Sequence record: PQ464590.1
DNA: 64,000 nt
Reading direction: 5' to 3' (one strand)
Shown here: piece after piece, positions 9,253-60,387 of the stretch
Layout of the letters: each line of letters begins with the position of its first letter
Position numbering within the stretch: position 1 is the first letter of the stretch
Made by a program: the position numbers and the translations under genes
The notes under the pieces: generated by a model
Database searches by the model: none
Told to the model about the DNA's origin: nothing
Seen by the model: the letters and a program-made list of their open reading frames with translations, nothing else

Positions 9253-9281
9253 AATAAATCCTTTTATCTGTGTGATACCTT

Positions 9282-9311
9282 ATTATATCACATTTTTTGC
9301 TACCATTTCAA
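9282..9311 (-). promoter_or_regulatory. Phage-class promoter (TTGAAA-18-TATAAT, with ATGTGA before the -10)
   Basis: tattatatcacattt at 9281; weakest upstream box of the class. Confidence 0.6.
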
Positions 9312-9833
9312 AAATTCGTTCACATCGAGAGAATATTTTATTGAATCCACCATATGAAGCCCAATCAGATACAAACAATAGCTCGCAACTGAACTTCCAC
9401 GGCCTAAGCCCCAAAAGATTTCATGCTCTTCCATATAGTCAACCAACCAAATCATACAACGTAATAGTTTAGTCATGTTGTAGCTCTCGTATAAACTCAA
9501 CTCGTACAGTACTCGTTCTCTTTCTACATCAGTACTGCACTTTTGAAGAAAGAATTCCTGTAAGTTGATTTTGTCATATACTGAATCATATCTCCACAAC
9601 TCATGATTCTGACTGTGGTCTATTTTATAATCCAGCATACGATGAGATAACCCGAATTTCTTACAGTTCTCATTGAACTTCAATCGTTCAGGTTCATCCA
9701 TTTCCATCAACTGCATGTACTGTATATCTTGACCGCAGTTCATGGCATATACTACTGCATTCAGGTTACAGTGAACATCACCATCCTGACTTATAAATCT
9801 GTTTCCTTGTACTTTCATTAGGTCGTTTCTCAT
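9300..9833 (-). CDS. DnaE (Pol III alpha, C-family)-like N-terminal fragment
   Basis: RVLYEL...WLVDYM...WGLGRGSSVASYCLYLIGLHMVDSIKYSLDVNEFLK aligns by eye with DnaE RL..EL...[35 protein letters not shown]. Confidence 0.8.
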   Translation of the reverse strand: MRNDLMKVQGNRFISQDGDVHCNLNAVVYAMNCGQDIQYMQLMEMDEPERLKFNENCKKFGLSHRMLDYKIDHSQNHELWRYDSVYDKINLQEFFLQKCSTDVERERVLYELSLYESYNMTKLLRCMIWLVDYMEEHEIFWGLGRGSSVASYCLYLIGLHMVDSIKYSLDVNEFLKW

Positions 9834-10086
9834 CCTCTTCAGATGCTAAGTAAGAATCAGAATCGAACACACAACTATCTTCATCACGCCAGCTTTCAGC
9901 TTCTTTACGTGAATGACGTAAGTAGTTCTCTTCCTCACAGGCTTGAAGTACCATATACATACCGTTAAGAATGTCAGATCCCATACCCGCAGCACGGGCA
10001 TGTGAAATCTTAGTACTCATATCTAAAATCTTTTGATTTAATTCCTTATCACTCATACCCTCTGGGCTGAAAAATGGATTGAACAT
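9778..10086 (-). CDS. Hypothetical protein
   Basis: 102-aa ORF with GGAGG SD. Confidence 0.65.
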   Translation of the reverse strand: MFNPFFSPEGMSDKELNQKILDMSTKISHARAAGMGSDILNGMYMVLQACEEENYLRHSRKEAESWRDEDSCVFDSDSYLASEEDEKRPNESTRKQIYKSGW

Positions 10087-10087
10087 G

Positions 10088-12484
10088 TTAACCTCCGATT
10101 CTACTCTGTTCTTTAATTTGAATTGTATAATTGTTCTTCACGTACTTGTTGTACTCTTGGAAAAAGTACTGGAATTCTACATATGTGATATCGAATTCTT
10201 CATTCACTAAGGTTTGGTGCTCGTTAGAACGTACCAATCTGTTATAGAACGCTTCGGCCTGACCAGGATTAAAGTAAGCAACTGGAATTACAGGCATGAA
10301 TTCAGCCTTAAGTCCATCTTCCAAGTACGGGTGGTTCATGTATCGAGGAACAGTGTCAATCATTTCTGATGACAGACCTGGAATCATAGGAACCGTTATA
10401 CCGCGATTTTGGAAGTCAGTAGGATCTGATAGTAAGTTAGTTACGTCTTCGCCAACAGCTTTATAAATGTTTTCACGTAATCCGAAGAATTCAGAAAGGA
10501 ATGCAGTGTCCTGCATCGTGTATGTGAACGGGTCCATAGAAACGGATACCGTAGTTCCTGCTGGGTGAATCTCCCTGTACAGAACATCATACAATACATT
10601 TCCGAGACTGTCAAGTGCTGAACGTATTTTATAATTACCCATTACAAAACCAAAAATACCATTAGGAACTGGTGCACCGTGTTCAGGATTAATCACATTA
10701 TCACGTAACGTCTTCTTCATTGCTGCAAGAGTTGTGTACGGATAAGTACTACTTACAAAGTTTTCTTTAAGTAAAATCCTAGGGGTTTTCTGCAATCCAT
10801 AGCGATCATCAACTCCACGATAGTAGTACTGATTTGCAAACTGTGAAGTACTGATAGTACTGAACCATTTACGCTCAAATGGCATACTTGGCTTAATATA
10901 AGCACTCAAAAAATTCTGACCGAACCCTCTAATAATTCTTAATTCAAAAGTACTAGTAATCGAAGCTCCAGATTTTTCCGTAGCTCTGACATCGAACTCA
11001 AGTTTTATCTCATCGTTCGTCGTAAAATCCTGTGCTCTAGCATATGCAGTACCAATCAACGTACCATCAGCAGCGAGGTCCAAATTATATTTTGTAATGT
11101 CATCACGAGATGAAGATGCTATTTCATACGTAACTAACGTACCAGTGGCTTGAATCTTTGGATATACGGTATGACCAAAATATTCACCAACGTGAATTGC
11201 ACCCAAATTCTTATCAGTGATGAAATCAATACCATCACCAGTACTTGCGTTTACAATCATTCTAAATGTACGTTCTTGACCGATAATCCCTGATCCCAAC
11301 GCTGCATTGTAATATCCTAAATCATTCCAGGCAGTACTGTCAAATACTGCCTTTTGAACTCCACTATCATAGACATCTTTAATAACGTACGGATATACTA
11401 AAGTATTTTTCAATTGATACAAGTGACCGGGAATTGGAGAACCATCAATATAAGAAATATCTTGAGGACATACCCACATTTGGTACGCCTTAAAACGTTT
11501 ACCAACATAAAATGCATCCTTCTCGGTTTTGTATAAATCAGTAGGGGCGATAATGCGAACTCTGAAATATGCATCGATTGGGTCAGATTCGTATAAAAGT
11601 GTACCAAGGAATTGTCCGTTGGAGTTGAATTTCAATCCAGAATTGATTTTGTTCCCAAGTTCATCAACAATAACAACTGGCATCTCTTCCGATTCAGGAG
11701 GCCACGTTGCAGTACTATCAGGTGTGATAGTTGTTCCTTTTCCTGTTCTATGAGTACTTGGTATCGAAGACATAGGCAAATCTAAAATACGATAATCAGG
11801 ATAGAATACACGATTTGAATCATCATCACTGGCGGCATCACCATCTATATATTTTCTACTTCTACCGAATGCTTGAACAAACGAACGACTGTTAGAACCG
11901 AAGTGCATTTCTGAAATACTATACATTTCGTCACGTACAATTAGTGATGGTGTCACCCAAACTTCAGTACTGTTATCATACGCAATAGTTGCTGTGTTAT
12001 TTCCTATTACCCCTGAACTTTCAACATTTGCTATTTGACCATCAATCAATGTTACTACGTTCATTTCGTTCAAAAAGAATTGTAGACTTTCTGGACCATC
12101 CCATACACCGTCAACATTACAATGAACTTTAATGAAATATATGTCTTTGGTTAGTGTTGTTAATTTGAATGATTTTTTTTGTAGTTTAACTTTATGTGTT
12201 CCATTAATTTTATTTGTACTACCATCATAACCGAGTGGTTTTAAATTATTAATGTCTTCACCAACCATGATCGTGAAATCTCGGTCTTCTAATGTCTCAC
12301 CAGTACCTTTAATTTGGTAAGTAAGTTCTAAGTACTGATCGTTAGTAATTTCATAAACATCTGGATCACTCACTTTATCCCTGTTAATGCTTATACGGAC
12401 ATAAGTGGTTCCACCTTCAGTAATAATATTCGTATCAGCCTTCAAATCCCAATGAGGTGTAAATTGTGCCATGTAAATCTCCAA
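10088..12484 (-). CDS. Large virion protein, probable baseplate/tail-associated (Ig-like segments)
   Basis: 798 aa, beta-rich, with segments like SGLKFNSNGQFLGT and LAADGTLIGT; TATAAATA late promoter at 12505-12512. Confidence 0.5.
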   Translation of the reverse strand: MEIYMAQFTPHWDLKADTNIITEGGTTYVRISINRDKVSDPDVYEITNDQYLELTYQIKGTGETLEDRDFTIMVGEDINNLKPLGYDGSTNKINGTHKVKLQKKSFKLTTLTKDIYFIKVHCNVDGVWDGPESLQFFLNEMNVVTLIDGQIANVESSGVIGNNTATIAYDNSTEVWVTPSLIVRDEMYSISEMHFGSNSRSFVQAFGRSRKYIDGDAASDDDSNRVFYPDYRILDLPMSSIPSTHRTGKGTTITPDSTATWPPESEEMPVVIVDELGNKINSGLKFNSNGQFLGTLLYESDPIDAYFRVRIIAPTDLYKTEKDAFYVGKRFKAYQMWVCPQDISYIDGSPIPGHLYQLKNTLVYPYVIKDVYDSGVQKAVFDSTAWNDLGYYNAALGSGIIGQERTFRMIVNASTGDGIDFITDKNLGAIHVGEYFGHTVYPKIQATGTLVTYEIASSSRDDITKYNLDLAADGTLIGTAYARAQDFTTNDEIKLEFDVRATEKSGASITSTFELRIIRGFGQNFLSAYIKPSMPFERKWFSTISTSQFANQYYYRGVDDRYGLQKTPRILLKENFVSSTYPYTTLAAMKKTLRDNVINPEHGAPVPNGIFGFVMGNYKIRSALDSLGNVLYDVLYREIHPAGTTVSVSMDPFTYTMQDTAFLSEFFGLRENIYKAVGEDVTNLLSDPTDFQNRGITVPMIPGLSSEMIDTVPRYMNHPYLEDGLKAEFMPVIPVAYFNPGQAEAFYNRLVRSNEHQTLVNEEFDITYVEFQYFFQEYNKYVKNNYTIQIKEQSRIGG

Positions 12485-12504
12485 AATGATTAAAAGCTAT
12501 GTGG

Positions 12505-12512
12505 TATTTATA
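12505..12512 (-). promoter_or_regulatory. T4-type late promoter TATAAATA
   Basis: Plus strand tatttata; exact T4 late consensus, just downstream of a terminator. Confidence 0.7.
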
Positions 12513-12517
12513 AGAAC

Positions 12518-12540
12518 AAAGGACGCTATATGCGTCCTTT
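12518..12540 (-). terminator. Terminator after topoisomerase genes
   Basis: aaaggacgc-tatat-gcgtccttt. Confidence 0.7.
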
Positions 12541-12544
12541 AATA

Positions 12545-13951: not shown

Positions 13952-14003
13952 TCCATTGCCTCTTTGATATTATGGGGAACTTCATGTCCCCCCTTGTACT
14001 AAT

Positions 14004-15965: not shown

Positions 15966-15999
15966 TATAGTTTCCTTTCTATTGTCTCTTAGCATAGTT

Positions 16000-16029
16000 A
16001 TTATATCACATTTTGTTTCTTTGTCTCAA
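16000..16029 (-). promoter_or_regulatory. Phage-class promoter TTGAGA-18-TATAAT
   Basis: attata 16000-16005, tctcaa 16024-16029. Confidence 0.75.
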
Positions 16030-18772: not shown

Positions 18773-18801
18773 AATATACGTCATTGCGAAGCTCATGTCA
18801 A
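18773..18801 (-). promoter_or_regulatory. sigma70 promoter TTGACA-17-TATATT upstream of infC
   Basis: aatata 18773-18778, tgtcaa 18796-18801. Confidence 0.65.
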
Positions 18802-22106: not shown

Positions 22107-22136
22107 ATTATATCACATCATTTAGAAATATCCCAA
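22107..22136 (-). promoter_or_regulatory. Phage-class promoter TTGGGA-18-TATAAT
   Basis: attata 22107-22112, tcccaa 22131-22136. Confidence 0.75.
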
Positions 22137-24601: not shown

Positions 24602-24631
24602 ATTATATCACATTTTTGGAATGCCTCCCAA
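24602..24631 (-). promoter_or_regulatory. Phage-class promoter TTGGGA-18-TATAAT
   Basis: attata 24602-24607, tcccaa 24626-24631. Confidence 0.75.
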
Positions 24632-30264: not shown

Positions 30265-30294
30265 ATTATATCACATTATGTAAATTTATCTCAT
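30265..30294 (-). promoter_or_regulatory. Phage-class promoter ATGAGA-18-TATAAT
   Basis: attata 30265-30270, tctcat 30289-30294. Confidence 0.7.
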
Positions 30295-36722: not shown

Positions 36723-36752
36723 ATTATATCACATTTTTAGGTTCTATCTCAC
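36723..36752 (-). promoter_or_regulatory. Phage-class promoter GTGAGA-18-TATAAT
   Basis: attata 36723-36728, tctcac 36747-36752. Confidence 0.7.
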
Positions 36753-41184: not shown

Positions 41185-41622
41185 TTAGTAGTACGAATCT
41201 TCTTCGTCTTCATCTTCATCGTCAATGTCTTCTACATCTTCATTGCCGTAGAACTCTAGACCGTAAGTATCGCACATTTCTTGTAGTTTATCAGGGTCAG
41301 TGTCAAGATATGAATCGAAATTACCAGTAAGACTGATTACATCAATATACGTTTGACTGTCAGTACTCGCATAGATAATGTCATATTTTAGCTTCGGTAC
41401 TTTGTCTTCGATGCGACTTTGGATTTCATAGATATTAACCCATGAAGAGCCATTACAGTCACAACGCCATACGTTAGTGTCATTAGTTTCCAATTCTGGA
41501 ATATAATCTATAGATGATACCATATCATCCATAATACCGTCATCGTTCAATAATACGTCAATGACGTTTAGTGTTTCTTCATCGCCAATAAATGCGATAC
41601 TTGATCTTAGTTCCATCTGCAA
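41185..41622 (-). CDS. Hypothetical acidic protein
   Basis: 145 aa with a D/E tail. Confidence 0.65.
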   Translation of the reverse strand: MQMELRSSIAFIGDEETLNVIDVLLNDDGIMDDMVSSIDYIPELETNDTNVWRCDCNGSSWVNIYEIQSRIEDKVPKLKYDIIYASTDSQTYIDVISLTGNFDSYLDTDPDKLQEMCDTYGLEFYGNEDVEDIDDEDEDEEDSYY

Positions 41623-41649
41623 TAATTCCCTTGTTTCAGTTACTCTTTG

Positions 41650-41679
41650 ATTATATCACAAAATCTGGGTTTATCCCAG
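41650..41679 (-). promoter_or_regulatory. Phage-class promoter CTGGGA-18-TATAAT
   Basis: attata 41650-41655, tcccag 41674-41679. Confidence 0.7.
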
Positions 41680-43155
41680 ATTTTGCCAATCTTTCACGTC
41701 AATCTTAGTGTGTGGATATTCGACTTCTTTATAGTACGCAATACGCTCTCTAAGGTGTTTAGCACTGTATTTGTTAGAACCACTAATATCATAAATCTCT
41801 ACGTGGTCTTTATCTTCTGCTCGGCGTAATCCACGTCCAATGGACTGAATTGTACGAACAAAGCTTTTCCCTGGCTCGATCAGTACTACATTATATAAAC
41901 GACTGATACTGATACCAGTACTTGCTACACCGTAAGTCGCAATAAGAATTCGGTTATCCGCCCAACGTATTTCACCGTACGATGCTTCACGGTCCTTCTT
42001 CTTAGTTTGTCCACGAACGAATTCACTCTTTGGTATACCAAGGAACTCACATAGTAGTTCTCCAGCTTCTAATCTATCGACTAGTACTAAAGTGTTTCCG
42101 CTCTCAGATATTGCACCTATAAGTTGAGCTATATATTTCATTCGCTCTTTGTCAGTAACAAGGTACTTCATCTCTTCTGCGTACGTTGCAAATTTCAATG
42201 TACTTTTCAGTTTGATGCAGTTCACATTACAAGTACTAAGAATCTTTTTGTCTTGTAGTTCTTTTGCTGTGATTGTGTAAATCACATCACCAACGTTACA
42301 ACGAATCTTCGCCGCCACTACAGGATCTTTAGGGATTGTACCCGTCAAGCCCCAACGTAGTGGGATATCCTTCATTACTTGCCCCAGAACGGCCTGTAAC
42401 GCTTCTGCTGCTGAAGTGTGGGCTTCGTCCACCATGACGCATACAACACCGTCAATGAAGTCATATACGTCCTGCTCGGTCATTTCAATCTCACCTTTCT
42501 TGGTTTGTTTCCACAGTGAGTTCAATGATTGCCAGGTTGTGATGGTGTGCTGATGGCCCAACTCTTTCTTATCACCATAGAATACCCCTGCATCCAACCC
42601 TACCATTTCGTAGTCATTGTATGTTTGCTGAACTAGATCAGTACTGGGGACGATGATAATACTACGTCCATATTTTTCTACACATTTTGATAGTGCAGCC
42701 GTGATGAGTGTTTTACCAGAACTAGTACTAGCAAGTAGTAGTCCATGATTATTACGTAGACATTCATTCACTGCATTCACTTGGTGCTCACGGAGGATAA
42801 TACTTTTACCCTCCATGTGGTGTCCTGCACCAAATTCTACATAGCTGAAAAGATTCTCATCTATTTCTTCGAATTCAAAATTGTGTGGAATGCGTTGGTC
42901 TTCTACTTCTATACTCACATCATGTTTGTCAAGAATCGGGAGTAGTTTATCAAGCATGTGATAATAAGTACTACCACCCATATTCATGAAGTTTACTTTA
43001 CCATCCCAACGTCCCATTCTACCAGCAGGGGTGAATTTCGCGTACGGTAGTACGTAAGAGACAGCACGCACCATCTCATTACGAACACTGATGTTGAGTC
43101 CTTCAAATTTACAGTTCACTTCATCCTGAAGTATTAGTTTACAAACGCCACTCAT
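41671..43155 (-). CDS. uvsW: UvsW-like SF2 helicase
   Basis: GRWDGK, LREHQ, TSSGKTLI, VDEAH, GLTGT, ATYGVASTGISI, QSIGRGLR. Confidence 0.93.
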   Translation of the reverse strand: MSGVCKLILQDEVNCKFEGLNISVRNEMVRAVSYVLPYAKFTPAGRMGRWDGKVNFMNMGGSTYYHMLDKLLPILDKHDVSIEVEDQRIPHNFEFEEIDENLFSYVEFGAGHHMEGKSIILREHQVNAVNECLRNNHGLLLASTSSGKTLITAALSKCVEKYGRSIIIVPSTDLVQQTYNDYEMVGLDAGVFYGDKKELGHQHTITTWQSLNSLWKQTKKGEIEMTEQDVYDFIDGVVCVMVDEAHTSAAEALQAVLGQVMKDIPLRWGLTGTIPKDPVVAAKIRCNVGDVIYTITAKELQDKKILSTCNVNCIKLKSTLKFATYAEEMKYLVTDKERMKYIAQLIGAISESGNTLVLVDRLEAGELLCEFLGIPKSEFVRGQTKKKDREASYGEIRWADNRILIATYGVASTGISISRLYNVVLIEPGKSFVRTIQSIGRGLRRAEDKDHVEIYDISGSNKYSAKHLRERIAYYKEVEYPHTKIDVKDWQNLG

Positions 43156-43172
43156 CCTTGAGTCCTTCTATT

Positions 43173-44015
43173 TTAGTTTACACGTTCATTGTACTCTGAC
43201 ATTAGGCTGAATGCCAAATCCATGTCGTAGTTTGGTTGATCTTCGTTTAGAACGTCACTGTTCTTGATCATCCATTCAATGTAGTTCAATGGAACGTTTT
43301 TCATTAGTTCGCCTTTGTGCTTGCCGAATGACATTACAGTGTAACGAATCGGTGTATTTACGAATACTGCAAGCTGGCTTCCAATGTCTTGCTCTGGGTC
43401 AATATGACCACGTTCAATACATACTTCAATCAACTTGATCAGTACTTTGTAGCACATAAACACATCATCTTTAGCAGCATGTGCGTTCACTGGTCGTGGT
43501 ACATCACGATACAAACCGAACTTGAACCACAAGTAGCTTAGAGTCAAATTCTTGAACTCTGCATCTTCTGCAAACAACTTCTTAGCTAGACGTAACGTAC
43601 AAATCCACTTGTCAGAATCAAGTAGATAATCAGGGAGAGTTGTTGCCCCACTATAACGTAGGTAGTTCTCATTGATCATACGTTGGTCGAATTGTACGTT
43701 GTGTCCTACATAGTACTTGACTTGTTCTTGCTTCATCATTAGCTCAATGTTCGGCAAGTCCTGGTCGTACGTGACACAATTCTGTAGGTCTTCGGTAGTG
43801 ATGAAGTGCACAGCGGAGGCTTCAGCGGGGACGTCTGCTACTGGTTTATAACGATTGGTGTAGTTTATCACATCATCAATACCAGTTGCAAGGTCCAGAG
43901 GGAAGGTCATACTTAGTTCGATGATATCAGAATCGTCATCCACACCTGTAGTTTCGGTGTCCAGTACTATAATCTGTTGAATGAATTCTTGCAGTTTAGT
44001 TTTGTTGAATTCCAT
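43173..44015 (-). CDS. DEDDh 3'-5' exonuclease (ExoX/epsilon-like) with C-terminal FGKHKG domain
   Basis: VLDTETTG, VHFIT, VGHNVQFD, CTLRLAK, AHAAKDDV; C-terminal MSFGKHKG..VP.NYIEW. Confidence 0.85.
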   Translation of the reverse strand: MEFNKTKLQEFIQQIIVLDTETTGVDDDSDIIELSMTFPLDLATGIDDVINYTNRYKPVADVPAEASAVHFITTEDLQNCVTYDQDLPNIELMMKQEQVKYYVGHNVQFDQRMINENYLRYSGATTLPDYLLDSDKWICTLRLAKKLFAEDAEFKNLTLSYLWFKFGLYRDVPRPVNAHAAKDDVFMCYKVLIKLIEVCIERGHIDPEQDIGSQLAVFVNTPIRYTVMSFGKHKGELMKNVPLNYIEWMIKNSDVLNEDQPNYDMDLAFSLMSEYNERVN

Positions 44016-44059
44016 GTTGTTCTCTCAAAAGAAAAGGACGCTTGATAGCGTCCTTATTA

Positions 44060-44521
44060 TTAGTCAATTCGTGCGTCTTCAATTCCTGCGGTTCTGAGTT
44101 TAACAATATTGTTAATCTGGAACGCTTTCATTTCTAGAGCTTTGATAATTCCCACATACTGATTACGAATATAAGCTACTTCGTTGATAAGTTCAGCTAG
44201 TTCTACCACTTCTTTATCTCCATCAACGTACTTCTTACAATCAGAAGAACTTAGTTGACGGCGGTAGTGTTCGAGGAAGTGTTTGAACTTCTCCGCTTCT
44301 AGTTGACGCATTTCAATTTCTAGTACTTCCATGACAGACTCGACCTGCTGTAACTGACCGAATCTGTTTTCATGGTACGATGGCAGTTTAGCGGCAATAT
44401 TTTCGATAATACCAACTTGTTTGATTTCCTTACGTGCTTCTTCAAGTTCTTTGTCGAAGTACTCAATCATGTCAATCAGTTTGTTTTTATCTGCTTTGAT
44501 TACCCAGTGCCAAGGTTTCAT
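44060..44521 (-). CDS. uvsY: UvsY-like recombination mediator
   Basis: Helical; YVDGD.E...NQY.GIIKALE.K.FQINNIVKLR.AG; lies between uvsX and uvsW. Confidence 0.8.
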   Translation of the reverse strand: MKPWHWVIKADKNKLIDMIEYFDKELEEARKEIKQVGIIENIAAKLPSYHENRFGQLQQVESVMEVLEIEMRQLEAEKFKHFLEHYRRQLSSSDCKKYVDGDKEVVELAELINEVAYIRNQYVGIIKALEMKAFQINNIVKLRTAGIEDARID

Positions 44522-45651
44522 TATTCTTCAGTACCCTCTTCTCCAGTACTGATATCAGCACCGAACGTTTCATCACCTTTCTCGTCTTCAGTTACTACAG
44601 CAATACTTGGATGACGGTTGAACTGTCCCATGATTAGGTCTAGGCAGTTGTCTTCGTTACGCATCCATTCTTTGCGATACTTCAGGATTTGTTCGCCAGT
44701 GTCGATATCGACATAAGCTAGACGGTTTCCTGATTTCTGAACGAGTTCATATTTTTCGAACATATCAAGTAGGCCGCTTCGTGGGTCCATACCTGTGTTC
44801 CAAGGAATTTTGATTTCAACTTCTTCGAATGGCTTGTTATAACGAGTCTTCATGACTTTACACTTAGAACGAATACCATTTACTTCTGAAGTTTTATTAC
44901 CATCGTTGTCTTCTTTTAGTTTTAGTTTACCCATAGCAACTACGATACTGCTTGCGTAAACTAGACCAGAACCACCACTGATTTTCGGATCAGGGTTAAA
45001 CATATCTTGACTTTCATATGAGTGGTTTACACAAACCATACCGATATTCAATGAACCCATACTGTTGATACAGTTAGTGATGTACATCTTTAGCTGTTTA
45101 GGTTTGTGACCCATATCACCTTTTAGTGTACCCGCTTTCATTTGGTCATTTGCAATTTCAGTATTCAACATACCAATACTATCAACGACAAATAGTACTT
45201 TTAGTCGGTCTTCTTTAGGAACGTCTTCATATTCTTTACGATATCCTTCAATGAATTCGTAAGTGAATTTAGCAACGTCACCAATCATACCCATGTTCAT
45301 TTTTAGTAGTTTCTCTGGTGAAGTGTCAACCCCAAGTGCTTGTAGCCAATCAGAGTCCAATGCGTTCTCGGAATCGATTAGTACTACGAAGATGCCTTGT
45401 TTTTGTGCTTCACGGATAATGTTACCACTAACGATGAATGATTTACCAGAACCGGATTCACCTGCGAACATTGTTACCTTACCTAGTGGGATTCCTTTCT
45501 GGAAATCACCGCTGATGCGATAGTTCAATGCCAAGTTACCAGTACTGATCCAAGTGTCAGGATCGTGAAAACCCATGCTTACGCCTGTGTTTTTCTTCAC
45601 TGATGCTGTACTTGCTTTGATGATATTTGCGAAACCTGATGTCATTTTCAT
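44521..45651 (-). CDS. uvsX: RecA/UvsX recombinase
   Basis: ISTGNLALN, AGESGSGKS, IDSE, VVDSIG, KISGG, KTRY. Start reassigned to 45651 (GGAG SD). Confidence 0.93.
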   Translation of the reverse strand: MKMTSGFANIIKASTASVKKNTGVSMGFHDPDTWISTGNLALNYRISGDFQKGIPLGKVTMFAGESGSGKSFIVSGNIIREAQKQGIFVVLIDSENALDSDWLQALGVDTSPEKLLKMNMGMIGDVAKFTYEFIEGYRKEYEDVPKEDRLKVLFVVDSIGMLNTEIANDQMKAGTLKGDMGHKPKQLKMYITNCINSMGSLNIGMVCVNHSYESQDMFNPDPKISGGSGLVYASSIVVAMGKLKLKEDNDGNKTSEVNGIRSKCKVMKTRYNKPFEEVEIKIPWNTGMDPRSGLLDMFEKYELVQKSGNRLAYVDIDTGEQILKYRKEWMRNEDNCLDLIMGQFNRHPSIAVVTEDEKGDETFGADISTGEEGTEE

Positions 45652-45667
45652 ATTTCTTCTCCATGAA

Positions 45668-45693
45668 ATAAAAAGGGGCAAATCCGTTGCCCC
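45668..45693 (-). terminator. Terminator after SSB
   Basis: aaaaa-ggggcaa-atccg-ttgcccc. Confidence 0.65.
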
Positions 45694-45711
45694 ATATGAA
45701 TTACTTTACTC

Positions 45712-46749
45712 TTACTTGTTTTGCATTTTCAAGCGTGCAACTAGGTCGGACGCAGATACTGGTGCAGAACTTGCAGCAGGTGCTGGAGTTACAACAGTCT
45801 CAACAGGTGCTGGTGCAGCTTCTTGAACAGGAGCAGCAACAGGTGCTGGGGTAGCTACAGGAGCAGGTTGTTGTACTGGAGCAGCAACGTTTGCAGTTGG
45901 AGCAGAAGTATTAGGTTTCTGTACGCCAGCAGGACGGTAAGCGAATGCCCAACGAGCAGGGTCATAAGGTTTACCATCTACAGATGCTTCAAACATTTCA
46001 GCGATTGCTTGTAGCTCTTCTGGAGTAGGTTGTTTAGGCATGAATTCGCCTAGGTTGAATAGACCGTATTGGTCAATTGCAGCACGTTCTTCTTCATTTA
46101 GTGGACGCTCAGACATTGAGAACTGAGACATGTCGTACTTGTTGAAGCCGCCGCCGTTTTTAGTTTTCACAACACCGAAATCACGACCGTGTTCGTAATG
46201 AACTGGCATTTCTTTGATGCCTGGGTTTAGTAGGATTGATTTCACTTTATCGAAGATTTCTTTGTTCACGAGAACACGACGAATCGGGTTTTCAGGAGCA
46301 ACATCGTCTTTTACTTCGACTGAGTCTGGTGCGATGAAGCACTGTAGTAGGTAAGACTTTTTCTTCCAGTACTTGGAAGCTAGATTTTTTAGTTCGTCAT
46401 TACCAGTTTCTTTAGCACTTTCGTACCACTGACGTAGTTCTTGAAGTACTGGGCAAGATTTTGGAACCCACATTTCGTTACATGGTACTTGAACACGCAC
46501 TTTGTCGGTATGCATACCAACAATGCCGTTGAACTCAAGGGTAATCATGTCACGTTCACGCCAGAAGAATGGGTTGTTCTCATCAGCATCTGGTAGGAAG
46601 CGTAGGTTTAGAGGTTTGTTCTCAGGGATGTTCCAAAATGCTAGGAAAGCATCAGGTTTACGTTCACCTGTGAATGTACCGTTTTTGATTGCCGCAGATT
46701 TTTCTTCTTGAGCTTGTAGTTGAGCACGAATTTCAGCTAGAGATTTCAT
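45712..46749 (-). CDS. 32: Single-stranded DNA-binding protein (gp32-like)
   Basis: Start MKSLAEIR (46749); LRFLPD, CPVLQEL, YWKKKSY, GRDF, YDMSQF; A/P-rich C-terminal linker. Confidence 0.85.
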   Translation of the reverse strand: MKSLAEIRAQLQAQEEKSAAIKNGTFTGERKPDAFLAFWNIPENKPLNLRFLPDADENNPFFWRERDMITLEFNGIVGMHTDKVRVQVPCNEMWVPKSCPVLQELRQWYESAKETGNDELKNLASKYWKKKSYLLQCFIAPDSVEVKDDVAPENPIRRVLVNKEIFDKVKSILLNPGIKEMPVHYEHGRDFGVVKTKNGGGFNKYDMSQFSMSERPLNEEERAAIDQYGLFNLGEFMPKQPTPEELQAIAEMFEASVDGKPYDPARWAFAYRPAGVQKPNTSAPTANVAAPVQQPAPVATPAPVAAPVQEAAPAPVETVVTPAPAASSAPVSASDLVARLKMQNK

Positions 46750-46826
46750 ATTGTATTCCTTTACGTTGGTTTCTTTGTTTATATTTGGCTTTACCTTCAA
46801 CACTACCGTGTGTCTCCGGTCTATCT

Positions 46827-46856
46827 ATTATATCACATTTTTCCGTTCTGTCCCAT
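46827..46856 (-). promoter_or_regulatory. Phage-class promoter ATGGGA-18-TATAAT (SSB proximal)
   Basis: attata 46827-46832, tcccat 46851-46856. Confidence 0.75.
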
Positions 46857-46938
46857 AATAGATTGAGATATTTTAAAGACTTATCTCACGTCTTATTGAT
46901 CTTAATGACCAATTAACTTGCCTTTCGGCTACCTATCT

Positions 46939-46968
46939 ATTATATCACATTTTCAGAATGTATCCCAA
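46939..46968 (-). promoter_or_regulatory. Phage-class promoter TTGGGA-18-TATAAT (SSB distal)
   Basis: attata 46939-46944, tcccaa 46963-46968. Confidence 0.75.
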
Positions 46969-46986
46969 AAAAGTTGGGGTAATTTC

Positions 46987-48294
<1,308 letters not shown>

Positions 48295-48306: not shown

Positions 48307-52258
<3,952 letters not shown>

Positions 52259-52265
52259 AAAATGA

Positions 52266-52336
52266 TAAATAATAGCATATAAACCGAGTTATTTTTTGAG
52301 CGTTTTCCTTTATGGGTTGAAATGAAATGATAAATA
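52266..52336 (+). promoter_or_regulatory. Tandem late promoters (GATAAATAA twice)
   Basis: taaata at 52266-52271 and 52331-52336, upstream of the plus-strand gene pair. Confidence 0.65.
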
Positions 52337-52382
52337 ACTTTAAGCAGGACAATCCTGCAACAAATTAGACAAGGAGATTTTT

Positions 52383-52946
52383 ATGGGTCTTAATTCTTTT
52401 GATCGCAACTATGGTATGAGTGCTAATAGTCGTGAGTTCTGGGGTGGTAACAACGGTTTCGTTACTGTAGTTCTATCTCTACCTGCTGACGTTGAAGTTG
52501 GTGAAACTGCCATTCTACCTGATGGTACTGAGATTGGCGATAACGCTGCTCAAACCGCTCTAACTGCTGCAAACTATAACCAAATGATGCTTACTCAGCT
52601 TCTAGCACAACGTGCAGTACTAGTTACTACTTCTGTACTAGCTAAAGGTACTGTTGATCCAACTGTATCAGGTTTTGGTGACATTGGTGGTAACGTAATC
52701 GCTTATGGTTCTGCTGGTACTCTAACTGCTACTTCTTTCGGTGTTACTTTCATTATCGAACGTCAAGATGTGTTCAATGCACAACCTGTTCGTCCAGGCT
52801 CTAACTACCCAGTTCCAGTTGATCCTGCTGCTGAATTCTGTGCTGACCTAGGCCAAGCTGCTGTGTTCCGTAAACAAGACGGTACTGAAGCTGCTGCTGT
52901 TCCAGTTGCAATTAAAGTATTCGCTGCTCTACCAGTACTAATCTAA
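52383..52946 (+). CDS. Ala/Thr/Val-rich probable abundant virion protein (paralogue 1)
   Basis: AGGAG SD, strong codon bias; QRAVLVTTS, FIIERQDVF. Confidence 0.7.
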   Translation: MGLNSFDRNYGMSANSREFWGGNNGFVTVVLSLPADVEVGETAILPDGTEIGDNAAQTALTAANYNQMMLTQLLAQRAVLVTTSVLAKGTVDPTVSGFGDIGGNVIAYGSAGTLTATSFGVTFIIERQDVFNAQPVRPGSNYPVPVDPAAEFCADLGQAAVFRKQDGTEAAAVPVAIKVFAALPVLI

Positions 52947-52961
52947 TAAGGAGAATATAAT

Positions 52962-53618
52962 ATGTTAGAACGTATTAATGGTTTCTCCGAGAGTGGTGTA
53001 CTTGGTTATTTCTATGGTAAGAACGCCCTAGTATCTATCGCAGTAGCTAACGCTGGTGATGTTGTAATCGCTGTTACTGGTGCTCCGTGCTCCTATGCAG
53101 GTATCCAACATTTCCTAAACACTAGCGATAAAGATACTATCACCGACTTCTTAAATGAAAAGGGTATTACCCGTGTTGATGGTACTCAATTCGTTGAAGC
53201 TACTGTAGACACTGACTACACTGCCGCTTTCGCTGCACAAACCAACATGAAACGCATTATCGACATCGTTCAACAACGTGCGGTAATCCTATCAACCTCT
53301 CTCATTGCACAAGATGTTAGTGTGACTGGTTGGAAAAACGCTCCAAACGGTGTTTCTGGTGCTGCTGCTGTTACTGATGCAAGTGCTATCACTTTCCTAA
53401 TCGAACGTGCTGATGTGTTTGACCGTGACGCTACTACCTTCCAAGGTGTACCACTACCAACCATCGATGAAGGTCGTCTACTTATTGATGACTTAACTGG
53501 TGTTCCGTTCCTAGCTGCTGATGGTACTGAAGTTAAACTTCTATCCTCTGCAACTGCGGCGGCTGCTGGCAACTTCGCAATCAAAATCCACAAGCAAATT
53601 CCTGCTATCCTGGATTAA
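52962..53618 (+). CDS. Probable abundant virion protein (paralogue 2)
   Basis: AGGAG SD; QRAVILSTS, FLIERADVF. Confidence 0.7.
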   Translation: MLERINGFSESGVLGYFYGKNALVSIAVANAGDVVIAVTGAPCSYAGIQHFLNTSDKDTITDFLNEKGITRVDGTQFVEATVDTDYTAAFAAQTNMKRIIDIVQQRAVILSTSLIAQDVSVTGWKNAPNGVSGAAAVTDASAITFLIERADVFDRDATTFQGVPLPTIDEGRLLIDDLTGVPFLAADGTEVKLLSSATAAAAGNFAIKIHKQIPAILD

Positions 53619-53626
53619 TTAAGTTA

Positions 53627-53664
53627 AAAAGAAAGGGAGAACTTTATGTTCTCCCTTTTTTTTA
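53627..53664. terminator. Bidirectional terminator
   Basis: aaagggagaac-tttat-gttctccctttt. Confidence 0.8.
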
Positions 53665-54667: not shown

Positions 54668-54668
54668 A

Positions 54669-54869
54669 TTAGTATCTCCCTGTTGTGTTGAACCAGTTAC
54701 CTTTATACCGAAAAGTAGCACCTTTGTCACCAGCAGTAAAGGCTTCATAGAACATGTTACCTTTACATTTAGAACATTCCTTCGGTGCTTCACGTTCCGA
54801 AATTTTCACGATTTTATCTTCTTCGTTGCCGCACCCTTCTTCGACGCAGCGGAAATTGTATATAGGCAT
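54669..54869 (-). CDS. FmdB-family zinc-ribbon protein
   Basis: MPIYNFRC...C...CSKC...F..KG.W..T. Confidence 0.75.
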   Translation of the reverse strand: MPIYNFRCVEEGCGNEEDKIVKISEREAPKECSKCKGNMFYEAFTAGDKGATFRYKGNWFNTTGRY

Positions 54870-54879
54870 GTTGATTCCC

Positions 54880-55500: not shown

Positions 55501-55520
55501 GATCTATTCTCCAATAATAA

Positions 55521-55549
55521 GAAATCAGGGGATAGTATACCATCCCCTG
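55521..55549 (-). terminator. Hairpin/terminator after the clamp gene
   Basis: tcaggggat-agtatacc-atcccctga. Confidence 0.6.
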
Positions 55550-55555
55550 AAAATA

Positions 55556-56287: not shown

Positions 56288-56347
56288 TTTTATATCTCCA
56301 TATCCATATGATTTTATGTTTTGTTACCATTCCTTGGTTACGCATCT

Positions 56348-56377
56348 ATTATATCACACTAAACAGATGCGTCCCAT
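56348..56377 (-). promoter_or_regulatory. Phage-class promoter ATGGGA-18-TATAAT
   Basis: attata 56348-56353, tcccat 56372-56377. Confidence 0.75.
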
Positions 56378-56400
56378 TTTTTTTGAATTATTTTTTTGAA

Positions 56401-56904
56401 TTATTTTTCTGACCCGTTCTCACGGTACATTTTTATTGCGGCATTCACTTCATCAGTGTTGTTGATGTCGATTTTGAAAACACTGCGTTTTTTCGGTGGT
56501 TCTTCAACGTAGTAATCTTCCAGAATACTAAGTGGATCATATGCAGCATCAGTTAGTGATGTAGTACTACCACGATACGTATTAGGTGCTACACCCGTAC
56601 CTTCAGGGGTGTATGTAGCAGTGTATGGACTAGGAGTGCTGGTAGTCCACGGTTGAGTTGGGAATGGTGTAATACTAGGACCAGGCTTAGTCCACCAATC
56701 ATTTTGTACTGGTAGCGTAGTGTGCACTACAGTTTTAGTAGCATCGAACACTTCTACTGTACTTCCATTGATATCTACAAAACCACGCGATACAAAGTTC
56801 GCATTACGTAGTAGTGCTGCTTCTTCATCATCTAGTGCTAGTACTAGTGTGATTTTTCCTTGGGAGGTCATAGCCTCCCCAATGCGTTGATACAAATTGC
56901 TCAT
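56401..56904 (-). CDS. Hypothetical protein with P/T-rich linker
   Basis: 167 aa directly after the polymerase. Confidence 0.6.
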   Translation of the reverse strand: MSNLYQRIGEAMTSQGKITLVLALDDEEAALLRNANFVSRGFVDINGSTVEVFDATKTVVHTTLPVQNDWWTKPGPSITPFPTQPWTTSTPSPYTATYTPEGTGVAPNTYRGSTTSLTDAAYDPLSILEDYYVEEPPKKRSVFKIDINNTDEVNAAIKMYRENGSEK

Positions 56905-56916
56905 CGTTTTTTTCCT

Positions 56917-59900
56917 TTACCAAGAGAAGAACCCGTTATTGAGTTCTAGAGTACTTTTTTCGTTGATTCCGATATCCATGTCCAGAATACCGAAGATATT
57001 ACCTAACTTCTTAGTTAGGATGGATTGTTCCATCTTTTCATCATCGAAAGGTAGATCCATGAACCACTCTGGTAGATACTCTACACAGTCAATTGGATAA
57101 CCCACTTTCAAGATACCAGTTGGATTTGGTTTTAGATCACAGACAATTACTTTCGTTCCGTCTGTCGCTTCTGGTACAGACTTATCTTCATAGATGTCAC
57201 ATAGACGGTTCCATTGGATAGCTGCTAGAACGTGGGAAACACCACATTTACCAGTCAAGTTGTACTCTTCTTCCAGTACTGAATATTTCTTCACAGTACG
57301 TGGTGCACCTTTCTCATGTGCTGGTTTATCTTTGAAGGTACGTTTGAACTCGCGAACACGAGTACGTAATTCTTCTTCAGTTTCACCAATAAGTAGTGCA
57401 ATTAGAGTACTTTGTAGGAAGTCCTGAATGTACTTCGGTGTATCAGAACGTTTGATTTCTAGACCCATTGCTTTGATTTCACCAGGAGAATCACCTTCAT
57501 CCTTACGGAAACCATCTTCCCAGTACTTCAGAATAGCATAACGCTTTTTCTTCAGGAATAGACCACGGGAGCCTACCATTTCTAGATCAGCACCTACTAG
57601 TTTACCGTTCTCTACACCAGTGTTGAAACTCTCATCCATGAATTCATAGAATGTTTCACCCATTTCGTCACCAATCTTCACGTACAGGTCAACAACTTCT
57701 TCGCGAGATAATTCGAATGGAATACCTTGTTCTTTCATGTAGTGAGCTACGCTGAAGTACACGGAGTCAGTGTCTCCATACACCACACAACCACCCTCAT
57801 GAGCGTATGAACCTGTTACAATCTCATTGATACGTGATGCCATGTGCTTAGTCATAGAACGCCCTGTGAGCGTTACAGACTGTCCTAGACGCTTATCAAA
57901 GAAACGAGAACCTTTGTTCAGAAGTGCACCGTACAAAGAGTTCAGTAGAATCTTACGAATCTGCTGGTTCTGTTTCCAGAACGCGGATTGTTTCTTGAAG
58001 TACGCTTTTTCTTCTTTAGTACAGAATAAGCGACCATCTTTTAGTACTAGAGCATTTTCTTGAATGAGTTTACCAACTTCTTCATAGTTAGCGTTGGTTA
58101 GTGCTACACGTAGCTGATACACGGGGTCTTCTTCGTGTAAGTTGGTTCGATACAATTCAAATCCAGCAGTGTGTTTTGTCATTGCTTCCTTGATTGCATC
58201 TAACGCATTCTCTGGTAATTCCCAACCATCGGAATACATGTGTTTGTAATCTAGAACCATTTTCTGCTGGGCTTTACGCTCAGAATACCATTCGGTAAGA
58301 ATTTCTGGAATTACACCGTACTTAGTCTTGTCAAATAGGGTTCCGTTTGCAGAAAGTACAATAGTACTATCCGGTGCAAAGATTAGGTCATGTAATTGTT
58401 CACCAGTTGCTTGGAAAGTACTGCCATCTTCCAAATCAACGTTGATTAGTTCTTGTGATTTCTCACGAACCATAGTGAATTCGATACTTGCAAATAGACC
58501 GTGCCATGCTGCTGTCCAATCTGGTTCGAATGCCTTAGACTTGGATCTAGCACGTTGTTCCGCAACACGTTTGTTCAAGTGTGCTTCTGTATAGTCTTGA
58601 CGTAGCTGACCAAGAATACATTCAGTACTCATACCAAGTGAACGCAGAACTGTTGGATATAGACTATTGAAGTCAGTACATCCCAGGTAATCAACTAATC
58701 CTAGTACTGGGTCTTGTACCCAAGCACCTGCTGCTTTAGCTGCTACTTTCTCTTCGCCTGAATCATCATCGTCACCCATGAAATCGTAACGATCATCCAC
58801 TTCCACTTCATCCTGGTTTTTCTTGTTGAAAACAACTTCACCACGTTTATGTGCTAGGTTGATTATAGCGGTGTCAATTAGTGCTACAGAACCCATTGTA
58901 GTACTGATAAGTACGCATTCTTTGTGTGCTAGACGGTTATGTAGATTGATGAAGTCCATCTTTTCGTCAATTTTCTTCAGTAGGATACTATCCTGCTTAG
59001 AATAACGCAAGAACTGCATATAGTCTTCACGATACAACTTGTCTAGAGAACCTTCATATGATACTTTGTTCTCACCAGTTACTTTCTCAGCGATGTAATC
59101 TAGTTTATATGATTGTTCCACTTGTCCAGCGTGTTTCTTGTACAGTGCTAGATAGTCTAAGTGTACTCGTCCAACTAGGTCATAAGTTACTACAACTTTA
59201 CCGAAGTTATCTGCTTCACGTGCTACAGGTTTTTTGTTCCACAAGCACCAGTGAGCTAGAGTTGCTTCGTTGAAGATTTTCTTAGTTCTGTTCACCATGT
59301 ATGGTATATCATAGAACTCACTGTTCCAACCGGATAACACGTCCGCATCAGCCATTAGTGAGAAGAATTCCATGAACATCTCTTTTTCGTCGGTATAAAG
59401 GATGACAGTACTGGTATCAGTACCTGATTCTTCATTTAGACGGTTCACGATATCTTGTGCTTCAACCAAGTCCATATCTGCTGGTGGCAGAGTTAGTACG
59501 TAGTCACAACCTGTCCAGTTCTGGTACAGAGAAATTGCAGTGACACGGTTGAAAGGATCATGTGTTGGTGCATATCCGAACTTCTGGTGGAAGTCAGTTT
59601 CGATATCGAAGAACATGATATTCAAGTCTGGGGAAGGTTTACCCATGTAGTGCTTTGCAAGAGTTTTGAATGTTACGTTGCAGTCCGCTTCGTAAATTCG
59701 CTGTCCAGCATGTAAATCAAGTGATGCTTTCATTTCACGGTACGAAGAAAATTCAAACTTCTCTGCCATAGTTCCGTGAATAGTTTTTTGAGTGCCGTAT
59801 GGAGATTCCACAAAGTACTCGTAAATAGGATCTAGTTCTTTTAGTACACGTTTACCGTTTACACGCTCTGCTACGTGAAGAACTTCGCTCCCACGTTTAC

Positions 59901-59925
59901 GTTCCATATATCCATCTACGTACAT
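56917..59925 (-). CDS. 43: B-family DNA polymerase (gp43-like)
   Basis: Exo FFDIETD, SGWNSEFYDIPY, YKLDYIA; pol DFNSLYP, KILLNSLYG, YGDTDS, KKRYA. Confidence 0.97.
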   Translation of the reverse strand: MYVDGYMERKRGSEVLHVAERVNGKRVLKELDPIYEYFVESPYGTQKTIHGTMAEKFEFSSYREMKASLDLHAGQRIYEADCNVTFKTLAKHYMGKPSPDLNIMFFDIETDFHQKFGYAPTHDPFNRVTAISLYQNWTGCDYVLTLPPADMDLVEAQDIVNRLNEESGTDTSTVILYTDEKEMFMEFFSLMADADVLSGWNSEFYDIPYMVNRTKKIFNEATLAHWCLWNKKPVAREADNFGKVVVTYDLVGRVHLDYLALYKKHAGQVEQSYKLDYIAEKVTGENKVSYEGSLDKLYREDYMQFLRYSKQDSILLKKIDEKMDFINLHNRLAHKECVLISTTMGSVALIDTAIINLAHKRGEVVFNKKNQDEVEVDDRYDFMGDDDDSGEEKVAAKAAGAWVQDPVLGLVDYLGCTDFNSLYPTVLRSLGMSTECILGQLRQDYTEAHLNKRVAEQRARSKSKAFEPDWTAAWHGLFASIEFTMVREKSQELINVDLEDGSTFQATGEQLHDLIFAPDSTIVLSANGTLFDKTKYGVIPEILTEWYSERKAQQKMVLDYKHMYSDGWELPENALDAIKEAMTKHTAGFELYRTNLHEEDPVYQLRVALTNANYEEVGKLIQENALVLKDGRLFCTKEEKAYFKKQSAFWKQNQQIRKILLNSLYGALLNKGSRFFDKRLGQSVTLTGRSMTKHMASRINEIVTGSYAHEGGCVVYGDTDSVYFSVAHYMKEQGIPFELSREEVVDLYVKIGDEMGETFYEFMDESFNTGVENGKLVGADLEMVGSRGLFLKKKRYAILKYWEDGFRKDEGDSPGEIKAMGLEIKRSDTPKYIQDFLQSTLIALLIGETEEELRTRVREFKRTFKDKPAHEKGAPRTVKKYSVLEEEYNLTGKCGVSHVLAAIQWNRLCDIYEDKSVPEATDGTKVIVCDLKPNPTGILKVGYPIDCVEYLPEWFMDLPFDDEKMEQSILTKKLGNIFGILDMDIGINEKSTLELNNGFFSW

Positions 59926-59964
59926 ATTATCTCCTTATAAAAAAATCGTAAACTTAATGCAAAA

Positions 59965-59991
59965 CAAAAGCCTCCAAACTAGGAGGCTTTT
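59965..59991 (-). terminator. Terminator
   Basis: aaaagcctcc-aaacta-ggaggctttt. Confidence 0.7.
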
Positions 59992-59998
59992 CTCTTAC

Positions 59999-60298
59999 TT
60001 ATTCGTCGTCATCTACTGGTAGATTTCCAGTGATTTGAAGAATTGTTTCGATTTCGTCCTGCTTACGTACTTTATCGAAGAAGTCACCTTTCTTCATACG
60101 AGCAGCAGCTTGTTTGATACTACTTGCATCAATACCAAGCTCATCGGCTAGACCATTGATGAAATCATTGTATGATGCTTTCACGTCCTCAAAGTAAGTT
60201 AGCTGTACTACTGCGTTGGTTAGACCGTCGCCTAGCACTTTACGTTGAGCGTCGTTTAGATCATGAATTTCAACTTTGTTCTGGGTGTTCTTAGCCAT
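59999..60298 (-). CDS. T4 DsbA-like dsDNA-binding protein
   Basis: 99 aa, helical; ADELGIDAS..KQAA and C-terminal EIETI resemble T4 DsbA (KDELGVDG). Confidence 0.55.
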   Translation of the reverse strand: MAKNTQNKVEIHDLNDAQRKVLGDGLTNAVVQLTYFEDVKASYNDFINGLADELGIDASSIKQAAARMKKGDFFDKVRKQDEIETILQITGNLPVDDDE

Positions 60299-60357
60299 TT
60301 GTTTTCTCCATTCCGTTGTTATAAAAAAAGCACCTAACGTCTGTGTTAGATGCTCTT

Positions 60358-60387
60358 ATTATATCGCATAATTTTGCGTTATCCCAT
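60358..60387 (-). promoter_or_regulatory. Phage-class promoter ATGGGA-18-TATAAT
   Basis: attata 60358-60363, tcccat 60382-60387. Confidence 0.7.

Follow-up and report, generated by a model that had tools for sequence, protein, structure and literature searches.

Erwinia phage Hallingskeid shares a fixed-spacing promoter class with its jumbo-phage relatives: a lineage-specific upstream box and a candidate phage sigma factor

Introduction

Which protein reads a promoter that joins a perfect host-type -10 element to a non-host upstream box at a fixed distance? The question arose from a 64,000-nt stretch of the genome of Erwinia phage Hallingskeid (bases 124001-188000 of record PQ464590.1, 366,158 bp; host Erwinia aphidicola B01_10), referred to here as the window. 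Hallingskeid is a jumbo myovirus of the Rak2/CBB/121Q group, to which T4 is a distant relative (PMC11780129). A sequence-only reading of the window had noticed twelve intergenic sites at which a TGRGA-type box precedes an extended -10 by 18 bp, and had suggested middle-mode promoters used with a phage activator or a remodelled sigma70, by analogy with T4 MotA. We labelled this class of promoters (TGRGA box, 18 nt, TATAAT) class-M, followed it through the whole genome and its relatives, and weighed the candidate readers of the box.

The class had appeared to be new, and in this respect the reading did not hold. "Divergent RpoD-like promoters" (Promoter 1) with the box TGAAACG have been described in phage CBB, where, of 18 examples, 11 precede DNA-synthesis genes and one precedes a gp55-like gene; that paper, citing Abbasifar et al. 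2014, assigns a motif of this type to Cronobacter phage GAP32 as well (Buttimer et al. 2017, PMC5259590). The CBB sequences of its Table S6, for example TGAAACGTACCAAAATTTTATGGTATAAT, share the exact 29-nt frame of the Hallingskeid sites. The class is thus already predicted in relatives, and Hallingskeid adds a new box variant. The CBB paper (PMC5259590) proposes no reader, no lineage-specific box and no link to a sigma helix. Our literature search for transcript-start or RNA-seq data on Rak2-like phages returned none for class-M and no experiment on the class. Only TTGAC/TATAATA promoters have been reported for the more distant phage PA5oct.

Results

Class-M is a discrete set of sites on one strand

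The pattern TGRGA-N18-TATAAT matched the window exactly 11 times, always on the minus strand, against 0.10 matches expected from 100 dinucleotide-preserving shuffles, none of which reached 11. The whole genome held 29 exact matches, again on one strand throughout. A weight matrix derived from these 29 returned 32 sites on one strand of the 366 kb and 0 on the other; 31 of them scored at least 28, one scored 16.4, and no further match exceeded 10, the lowest cut-off tried. Because the scores break off so sharply, class-M is a discrete set and not the tail of a distribution. The matrix sites within the window were identical to the twelve of the sequence-only reading, which had proposed just such a genome-wide motif check; its positions were reproduced on the minus strand, together with the NTGGGA or NTGAGA boxes at an exact 18-bp spacer in eleven of them and the TTGAAA at 9282.

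The consensus of the sites over the whole genome was tttTTGGGATAaatCCaaAAAATGTGATATAATAga. Over spacers of 15-21 nt, the gene strand held 30 pairings of TGRGA with TATAAT, 29 of them at exactly 18 nt. The downstream half, TGTGATATAAT, is a perfect extended -10 (TGnTATAAT, with TG at -15/-14) and was present at 10/12 window sites; the remaining two carry TGTGCTATAAT and TGCGATATAAT (1/12 each), and all three forms conform to the sigma70 extended -10. The element directly before the hexamer is TGTGA in Hallingskeid and T(G/A)TGG in CBB, both of the form TRTGn. The window sites are as follows, with gene names here and below taken from the deposited annotation of PQ464590.1.

9282..9311, minus strand: class-M with the variant box TTGAAATGGTA, score 33.3; before CDS0334, then a head-morphogenesis-annotated gene and a clamp loader
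16000..16029, minus strand: class-M, TTGAGAC-N-TGTGATATAAT; before the topoisomerase II large subunit
22107..22136, minus strand: class-M; before dihydrofolate reductase, RNase H and a Dda-like helicase
24602..24631, minus strand: class-M; before CDS0354 and a nucleotide pyrophosphohydrolase
30265..30294, minus strand: class-M; before exonuclease CDS0360
36723..36752, minus strand: class-M; before DNA primase and a DnaB-like helicase
41650..41679, minus strand: class-M; before CDS0378 to CDS0373, including a DNA polymerase-annotated gene
46827..46856, minus strand: class-M, proximal of a tandem pair; before SSB, UvsX, UvsY, an exonuclease subunit and a helicase
46939..46968, minus strand: class-M, distal of the tandem pair, 112 nt upstream of the proximal site
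52229..52258, minus strand: class-M with TGTGCTATAAT; before exonuclease CDS0389
56348..56377, minus strand: class-M; before CDS0396 and a phosphoesterase
60358..60387, minus strand: class-M with TGCGATATAAT; before CDS0399 and DNA polymerase

All twelve are intergenic or reach into the final few codons of the gene before them, as at 9282..9311, where the box overlaps the 3' end of CDS0335. The deposited annotation bears out the view that they mostly precede genes of replication, recombination and nucleotide metabolism. Outside the window, class-M sites precede a gp55-like late sigma with SbcCD, a Lon-like protease, an ATPase, a cytidyltransferase, nudix genes and two tRNAs. Two small annotated open reading frames (ORFs), CDS0384 (window 46785-46916, plus strand) and CDS0390 (52230-52352, minus strand), are placed on class-M promoters or between them and are unlikely to be genes.

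Positions are retained among relatives while the box changes

The comparison used pattern searches on whole records with reversed-pattern controls, together with scripts on eight fetched genomes. The class-M architecture was found on one strand in every relative checked (Rak2-like clade, XaC1, PAU), with the controls at or near zero. The boxes and spacings were as follows.

Hallingskeid: box TGRGATA, 18 nt
EJP2: box TGAGAYA, 19 sites at exactly 18 nt
G17 and A4: box TGRGACA, 18 nt
CBB: box TGRAACG, 34-40 sites, 40 at 18 nt
pEa_SNUABM_19 (BF type): box TGRAACG, 26 sites
Kaldavass: box TGRAACG, 28-37 sites, 37 at 18 nt
Three IMG/VR genomes: box TGRAAC(G/A), 30-33 sites each
Munch and two IMG/VR genomes: box CTTGGGACAAA, mostly 19 nt
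RaK2: box TTGAACA, 17 or 18 nt
XaC1 (Xanthomonas): box TGAAAC(G/A), 18 nt before TATACT
PAU (Sphingomonas): box TGAAACT, 18 nt before TATAAT

CBB Promoter 1 and class-M share the 29-nt geometry (a TG-R-x-A box, 18 nt, TATAAT, TRTGn before it) and the same targets, namely DNA-synthesis genes and the gp55-like sigma; they differ in the -35 consensus, TGAAACG there and TGRGATA here, which we treated as a box variant and not as grounds for exclusion. The positions are orthologous: 22 Hallingskeid sites have a downstream gene with an orthologue in CBB, and for 18 of them CBB also has a class site before that orthologue. The late-sigma, SSB, primase, topoisomerase and exonuclease promoters are retained in most or all of the genomes compared, and the SSB promoter at 46827 in 7/7. 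At the topoisomerase promoter (16000) the spacer CAAAGAAACAA is conserved and the box is not, being TGAGAC in Hallingskeid and TGAAAC in CBB, whose orthologous site reads TGAAACAAAGAAACAA. The 9282 site is of another kind, its form TGAAATGGTA being retained in CBB, G17, EJP2 and Kaldavass regardless of each lineage's own box. Lineage specificity extends beyond the box to bases -17 to -13 (position -13 is A in Hallingskeid and G in CBB) and, in XaC1, to the hexamer.

Hallingskeid (TGRGATA) and Kaldavass (TGRAACG) infect the same host species, Erwinia aphidicola, and differ in their boxes. With TGGGATA in the one and TGAAACG in the other, they form a matched pair suited to a swap experiment. The class published for CBB and GAP32 is in this comparison universal in the jumbo-phage clade, with a box that varies by lineage at positions that stay, and this combination points to the clade's conserved sigma70-like protein as candidate reader.

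A single sigma70-family protein is encoded

Exactly one sigma70-family (sigma70_r2) gene was found in the Hallingskeid genome: CDS0173, encoding 330 aa, at record 66628-67620, outside the window. A homologue was present in every class-carrying phage examined. Regions 2 and 3 of CDS0173 passed the Pfam cut-offs, and the protein aligned to RpoD through region 4.1 (aligned positions 5-202 of 238 for RpoD_Cterm); region 4.2 was too divergent to be detected by Pfam or NCBIfam models. An AlphaFold model of an IMG/VR homologue (mean pLDDT 63, about 70-85 in the C-terminal part) predicts for that part a pair of helices followed by a third, short one, then a beta hairpin and lastly a long helix. Residues 43-322 of this homologue model align with E. 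coli sigma70 94-610 at Z ~13, with a high rmsd as the domains are posed differently. For the C-terminal 81 residues of the CBB sigma, the best matches to real PDB structures were isolated Taq sigma-4 domains, at a weak E of 0.5-0.9.

The start of the final helix goes with the box. Among 21 genomes it reads S(R/H)xx(I/L/V)HR(R/K/C)Y in 8/8 TGRGA-box phages and SK(A/P)T(L/I)SR in 12/12 TGRAAC phages, and RaK2 has VRGTLHYKF. For XaC1, a TGAAAC-type box was predicted from the helix before the promoters were looked at, and was then found. Two 2-residue insertions in the C-terminal part of sigma are carried only by the three Munch-type phages, which have the 19-nt spacing. In an alignment with gaps placed by eye on predicted helices and the hydrophobic pattern, the three differing residues fall on R584, E585 and R588 of sigma70, residues that contact the -35 element. 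In sigma trees the TGRAAC type forms one side of a single well-supported branch, and when PAU is included, as an outgroup on a very long branch, a single clade holds the TGRGA phages and RaK2 (support 86/98). We rejected the idea that the partition of helix and box reflects many independent events, one branch on the trees being enough to explain it.

Upstream of the sigma operon there are canonical TTGACA-17 motifs and no class-M site. The 60-nt gap directly before the sigma gene holds an 11-bp hairpin with a T-run (record 67644-67671), a place at which a terminator is annotated in Munch. Read-through may be required for the sigma gene to be expressed.

Whole-record searches for MotA (PF09114) and AsiA (PF09010) gave no match at E<=1, and a MotA/AsiA mechanism was rejected on these results. 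A CBB-type helix-turn-helix (HTH) regulator adjoining the sigma gene was also considered as the reader and was rejected, being absent in 6/8 class-carrying genomes: it was found only in the CBB and Kaldavass lineages and not in Hallingskeid, EJP2, Munch, G17, RaK2 or XaC1.

Two further promoter classes in the genome

The separate class of five canonical promoters described in the sequence-only reading is real, all five being of the TTGACA-16/17-TAT(A/T)AT type.

645..673, minus strand: canonical TTGACA-17-TATTAT, before exonuclease CDS0323
2616..2644, minus strand: canonical TTGACA-17-TATAAT, before a tellurite-resistance-annotated gene
3893..3921, minus strand: canonical TTGACA-17-TATTAT, before CDS0325
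4495..4522, minus strand: canonical TTGACA-16-TATAAT, before CDS0326
18773..18801, minus strand: canonical TTGACA-17-TATATT, before CDS0343/0344

At three of them (window 645-690, 2616-2660 and 3893-3935) the -10 hexamer lies between inverted-repeat arms whose sequences are site-specific, for example GGGAGTA..TATAA..TACTCCC, ACGGGGTA..TACCCCGT and GTGACAC..GTGTCAC; Munch has the same design. Full terminator-promoter fusions around TTGACA occur at record 285223 and 186918, and also in RaK2 and Munch.

Virion genes are preceded, about 40-50 nt before the start codon, by a T4-late-like (n)ATAAATA(A/C). The T4 late motif TATAAATA itself was rejected as the definition of the late class, being rare (9 copies vs 2), and the shorter ATAAATA fits; one copy of TATAAATA, at window 12505-12520, precedes CDS0337. 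At record 201726 and 224629 late promoters stand back to back with class-M promoters on the opposite strand. This makes three motif classes in the Hallingskeid genome, in line with the proposal of Buttimer et al. for CBB (PMC5259590).

tRNA 5' ends and ORF-free elements behind class-M sites

Two tRNA-Ser genes identified with ARAGORN (record 102731 and 114663) start 9 nt after the last T of a class-M TATAAT, which places their 5' ends at +3 if transcription starts 7 nt past the hexamer. The predicted promoter geometry fits these independently known tRNA 5' ends, the two cases being not fully independent because their upstream regions are similar. Protein genes at most class-M sites have their start codon about 10-55 nt downstream of the predicted start.

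Four class-M sites outside the window have no downstream ORF; what follows each of them is a stretch of about 500-600 nt, and the four stretches are homologous to one another.

Record 340952-341621: ORF-free stretch behind a class-M site
Record 52704-53290: ORF-free stretch behind a class-M site
Record 196355-197025: ORF-free stretch behind a class-M site
Record ~275975-276280: ORF-free stretch behind a class-M site

They share the motif CCACTCGAAAAYGTAGAGG ... GAAACCCGTTAG and match an ORF-free gap behind the sigma gene of phage G17. They resemble a large RNA-like element in four copies, and the small plus-strand ORFs annotated in them are probably spurious. An Rfam search with two of the four gave no family match.

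Taken over this newly isolated 366-kb phage, these sites amount to a predicted transcription map with the starts of the replication-gene operons, of the late-sigma gene, of two tRNA genes and of the four RNA-like elements, and the map marks out small annotated ORFs with a promoter overlap as probable artefacts of annotation.

Discussion

A phage-encoded reader is indicated by the concerted change of the box

About 30 orthologous sites have switched their box in concert between lineages, and Hallingskeid and Kaldavass differ in the box while sharing a host species. Both observations would rule out host sigma70 alone as the reader, and they argue for one that is phage-encoded. To this extent the sequence-only reading was upheld: class-M is a discrete class apart from the TTGACA promoters, it precedes replication-type genes, and its lineage-specific boxes are in keeping with a phage-encoded specificity factor. 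Its likeness to T4 MotA was not sustained: the box is not a MotA box, the searches for MotA and AsiA homologues found none, and the genome instead encodes one sigma70-family protein.

We lean, by a modest degree, towards the phage's own sigma70-family factor as the reader, in a cascade from host sigma to phage sigma to the gp55-like factor that would resemble that of SPO1 gp28. Class-M would then comprise the delayed-early ("middle") promoters of a three-step programme on the host core RNA polymerase. In the first step host sigma70 would read the canonical TTGACA/TATAAT promoters, including those feeding the sigma operon. In the second, the phage sigma would replace sigma70 and read class-M, with a region 4.2-like C-terminal helix on the TGRGAYA box and regions 2 and 3 on TGTGATATAAT. 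In the third, one class-M member would drive the gp55-like late sigma gene, which would lead to use of the ATAAATA late promoters before virion genes. Because one sigma would touch both parts of the promoter, the proposal would explain the exact 18-nt spacing together with the fixed box and the fixed element at -17 to -13; the lineage-specific base at -13 and the XaC1 hexamer likewise fit one reader in contact with both promoter halves, a fixed distance apart. "Middle" timing is plausible, judging from the gene content, the TTGACA-17 motifs without class-M upstream of the sigma operon, and the late-sigma gene as a member.

Several points count against this assignment to the phage sigma or its middle timing. 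The -10 is a perfect host-type extended -10, so the host sigma70 holoenzyme could probably start there without -35 contact, in which case the sites may fire immediately. The partition of helix and box is essentially one evolutionary event, plus the changes in Munch and RaK2, and any other vertically inherited phage factor would correlate with the box equally well. The weak HMMER alignment places the helix residues differently from the by-eye mapping, whose assignment to the R584/E585/R588 positions is a lead drawn from predicted secondary structure alone. Finally, the PAU sigma homologue is annotated as an internal capsid protein, and were the Hallingskeid sigma injected, the class would be early and not "middle"; the CBB sigma is not flagged as a virion protein.

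A phage activator on host sigma70 is the strongest alternative

The box could instead be bound by a phage DNA-binding activator or a sigma-remodelling factor, unrelated to MotA/AsiA, that acts with host sigma70 on the extended -10. Its function would then be akin to sigma appropriation by T4 MotA/AsiA or to that of a class II activator. The perfect sigma70 extended -10 would suit this arrangement, the box needs a phage-encoded reader of some kind, and the hundreds of unannotated early genes could include such a factor. We nevertheless consider it unlikely. Besides the blanks for MotA and AsiA, the only annotated small HTH regulator near the CBB sigma is missing in most class-carrying lineages. 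The T4 MotA box is of TGCTT type, centred at about -30 and placed 11-13 nt from the -10, a tolerance that contrasts with the exact spacing of class-M. An upstream activator would leave the lineage-specific bases at -17 to -13 and the XaC1 hexamer unexplained, and the universally conserved phage sigma would be left without a promoter class.

Possible use by the unaided host enzyme and possible operator function

We regard it as quite unlikely that class-M sites are ordinary strong host sigma70 extended -10 promoters that fire on DNA entry, with TTGRGA as a tolerated -35 and the similarity of the copies due to copying or drift. TTGAGA does match TTGACA in 5/6 positions and TTGGGA in 4/6, the -10 and the TGn element are perfect, and extended -10 promoters are generally known to require little -35 contact. 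Tolerance of the box would not lead one to expect its high information, with the same departures from the sigma70 consensus in about 30 sites, or a set switched in concert at orthologous positions, two phages of one host included, while the specificity of the host stays unchanged. Moreover, TGAAAC with 18 nt persists in phages of Sphingomonas, Xanthomonas and Enterobacterales, and the genome has its canonical TTGACA promoters alongside as a class apart.

An inverted repeat is associated with part of the class. At 10/29 Hallingskeid sites the box forms the left arm of a 5-9 bp repeat with a folding energy z of -4.3 against column shuffles, and variants of the arm are paired with complementary partners (for example ATGGGA..TCCCAT and CTGGG..CCCAG). 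At 41650..41679 the repeat is 9 bp and followed by a T-run. Box-arm repeats were seen at window 41650-41690 and at record 276313, 267549, 304796 and 76103, the few that are followed by a T-run resembling terminator-promoter fusions. The repeats are not the operator of one protein, because the arm sequences vary by site beyond the box, and a dimeric transcription-factor operator or hairpin was rejected as the defining feature, the repeat being real in a third of the Hallingskeid sites and not general; it is outside the class definition. A main role for the box as one arm of a hairpin or palindromic operator, serving as a repressor site or as a terminator-like structure over the promoter, is very improbable despite the matched arms, given that two thirds of the sites lack a repeat, that the enrichment is weak or absent in EJP2, G17, CBB and Munch, and that most repeats are followed by an A-run and not a T-run.

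A possible co-evolution of sigma and regulon

Returning to the phage sigma as reader, we put forward tentatively, at a little short of an even chance, that its divergent region 4.2 (a helix-loop-helix with a beta-hairpin insertion) and the regulon of about 30-40 sites have co-evolved as a unit. SK(A/P)T(L/I)SR and TGAAAC at 18 nt would have been kept from PAU via XaC1 to CBB, with one switch to xHR and TGRGA in the enterobacterial branch, and a move to 19 nt with the two small insertions in the Munch lineage. If this is true, the phages would hold natural, matched sigma/promoter pairs, each orthogonal to the others as well as to host sigma70, and would offer a test-bed for DNA reading by sigma region 4 and a source of orthogonal expression parts.

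Comparison with known phage systems

Class-M and the T4 middle promoters share a host-like -10 with a non-host upstream box in place of the -35, as well as placement before replication and nucleotide-metabolism genes, upstream of a gp55-type late system, in a T4-related lineage; they differ in the use of MotA/AsiA by T4 (PMC6024815) and in the Hallingskeid box, TGRGAYA at exactly 18 nt from the -10. Hallingskeid has a sigma70-family gene, which T4 is not known to have. With gp28 of Bacillus phage SPO1 the shared logic would be the proposed passage from host sigma to an early phage sigma, a private promoter class and then late factors (PMC13401047). The two phages have unrelated sigma families and motifs, the -10 of the SPO1 middle promoters does not resemble the host's and that of Hallingskeid is host-perfect, and SPO1 is experimentally proven whereas the Hallingskeid case is known from sequence. 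Promoters of the phiEco32 type have a -10-like element without a -35 box. With gp36 of phiEco32/7-11, the likeness lies in an enterobacterial phage sigma70-family protein that directs the host core to phage promoters (PMC8948821). Those phages differ in being small podoviruses, and their sigmas are not close relatives of that of Hallingskeid. Thermus phage P23-45 reportedly (Tagami et al. 2014, as cited in PMC7318152) uses gp39 at middle/late extended -10 (TGTG) promoters with sigma region 4 disabled. A TGTG-type extended -10 for post-early transcription would be shared with this phage; its promoters are without a -35 box, in contrast to the Hallingskeid box at a fixed distance.

Additional observations

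Near-identical relatives of Hallingskeid were present in metagenomes from about 15 studies (groundwater, wastewater, landfill, sludge and food fermentation), with 50-94% of sampled words found. A metagenomic contig of 63.7 kb differed from Hallingskeid at 45/5,901 positions. The sequencing runs that a search turned up were all metagenomic and of DNA type, kept as contigs, a kind of data in which transcript starts do not show. Over window positions 41200-47100, variants from four metagenomic runs included no listed substitution within the three promoters, an uninformative result as about 1.8 were expected by chance; the one difference there was a 1-nt length change in the T-run beside the box, at 46966/46967.

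In XaC1, record 2148-27459 holds about 17 copies of GGGGATAGAGAAATG, a strongly conserved ribosome-binding-site-like motif that ends in the start codon and precedes the first genes. Each copy lies about 20-30 nt downstream of a promoter of TTTATAAT type.

The palindrome AGTACT occurs 1,313 times in the whole Hallingskeid genome against about 125 expected, or about once per 280 bp. Its copies are evenly distributed over coding DNA, in all frames, and non-coding DNA. The palindrome prefers the context CAGTACTG (412 vs ~7) and is also found in the spacers of the canonical promoters at window 3893-3921 and 4495-4522. AGCGCT and GGTACC have 0 copies in the whole genome, against 30 and 44 expected. 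An excess of AGTACT was seen in all relatives checked (EJP2, RaK2, G17, Kaldavass, CBB and Munch), and XaC1 prefers AAGTACTT. A phage protein that binds or modifies DNA could have AGTACT as its site.

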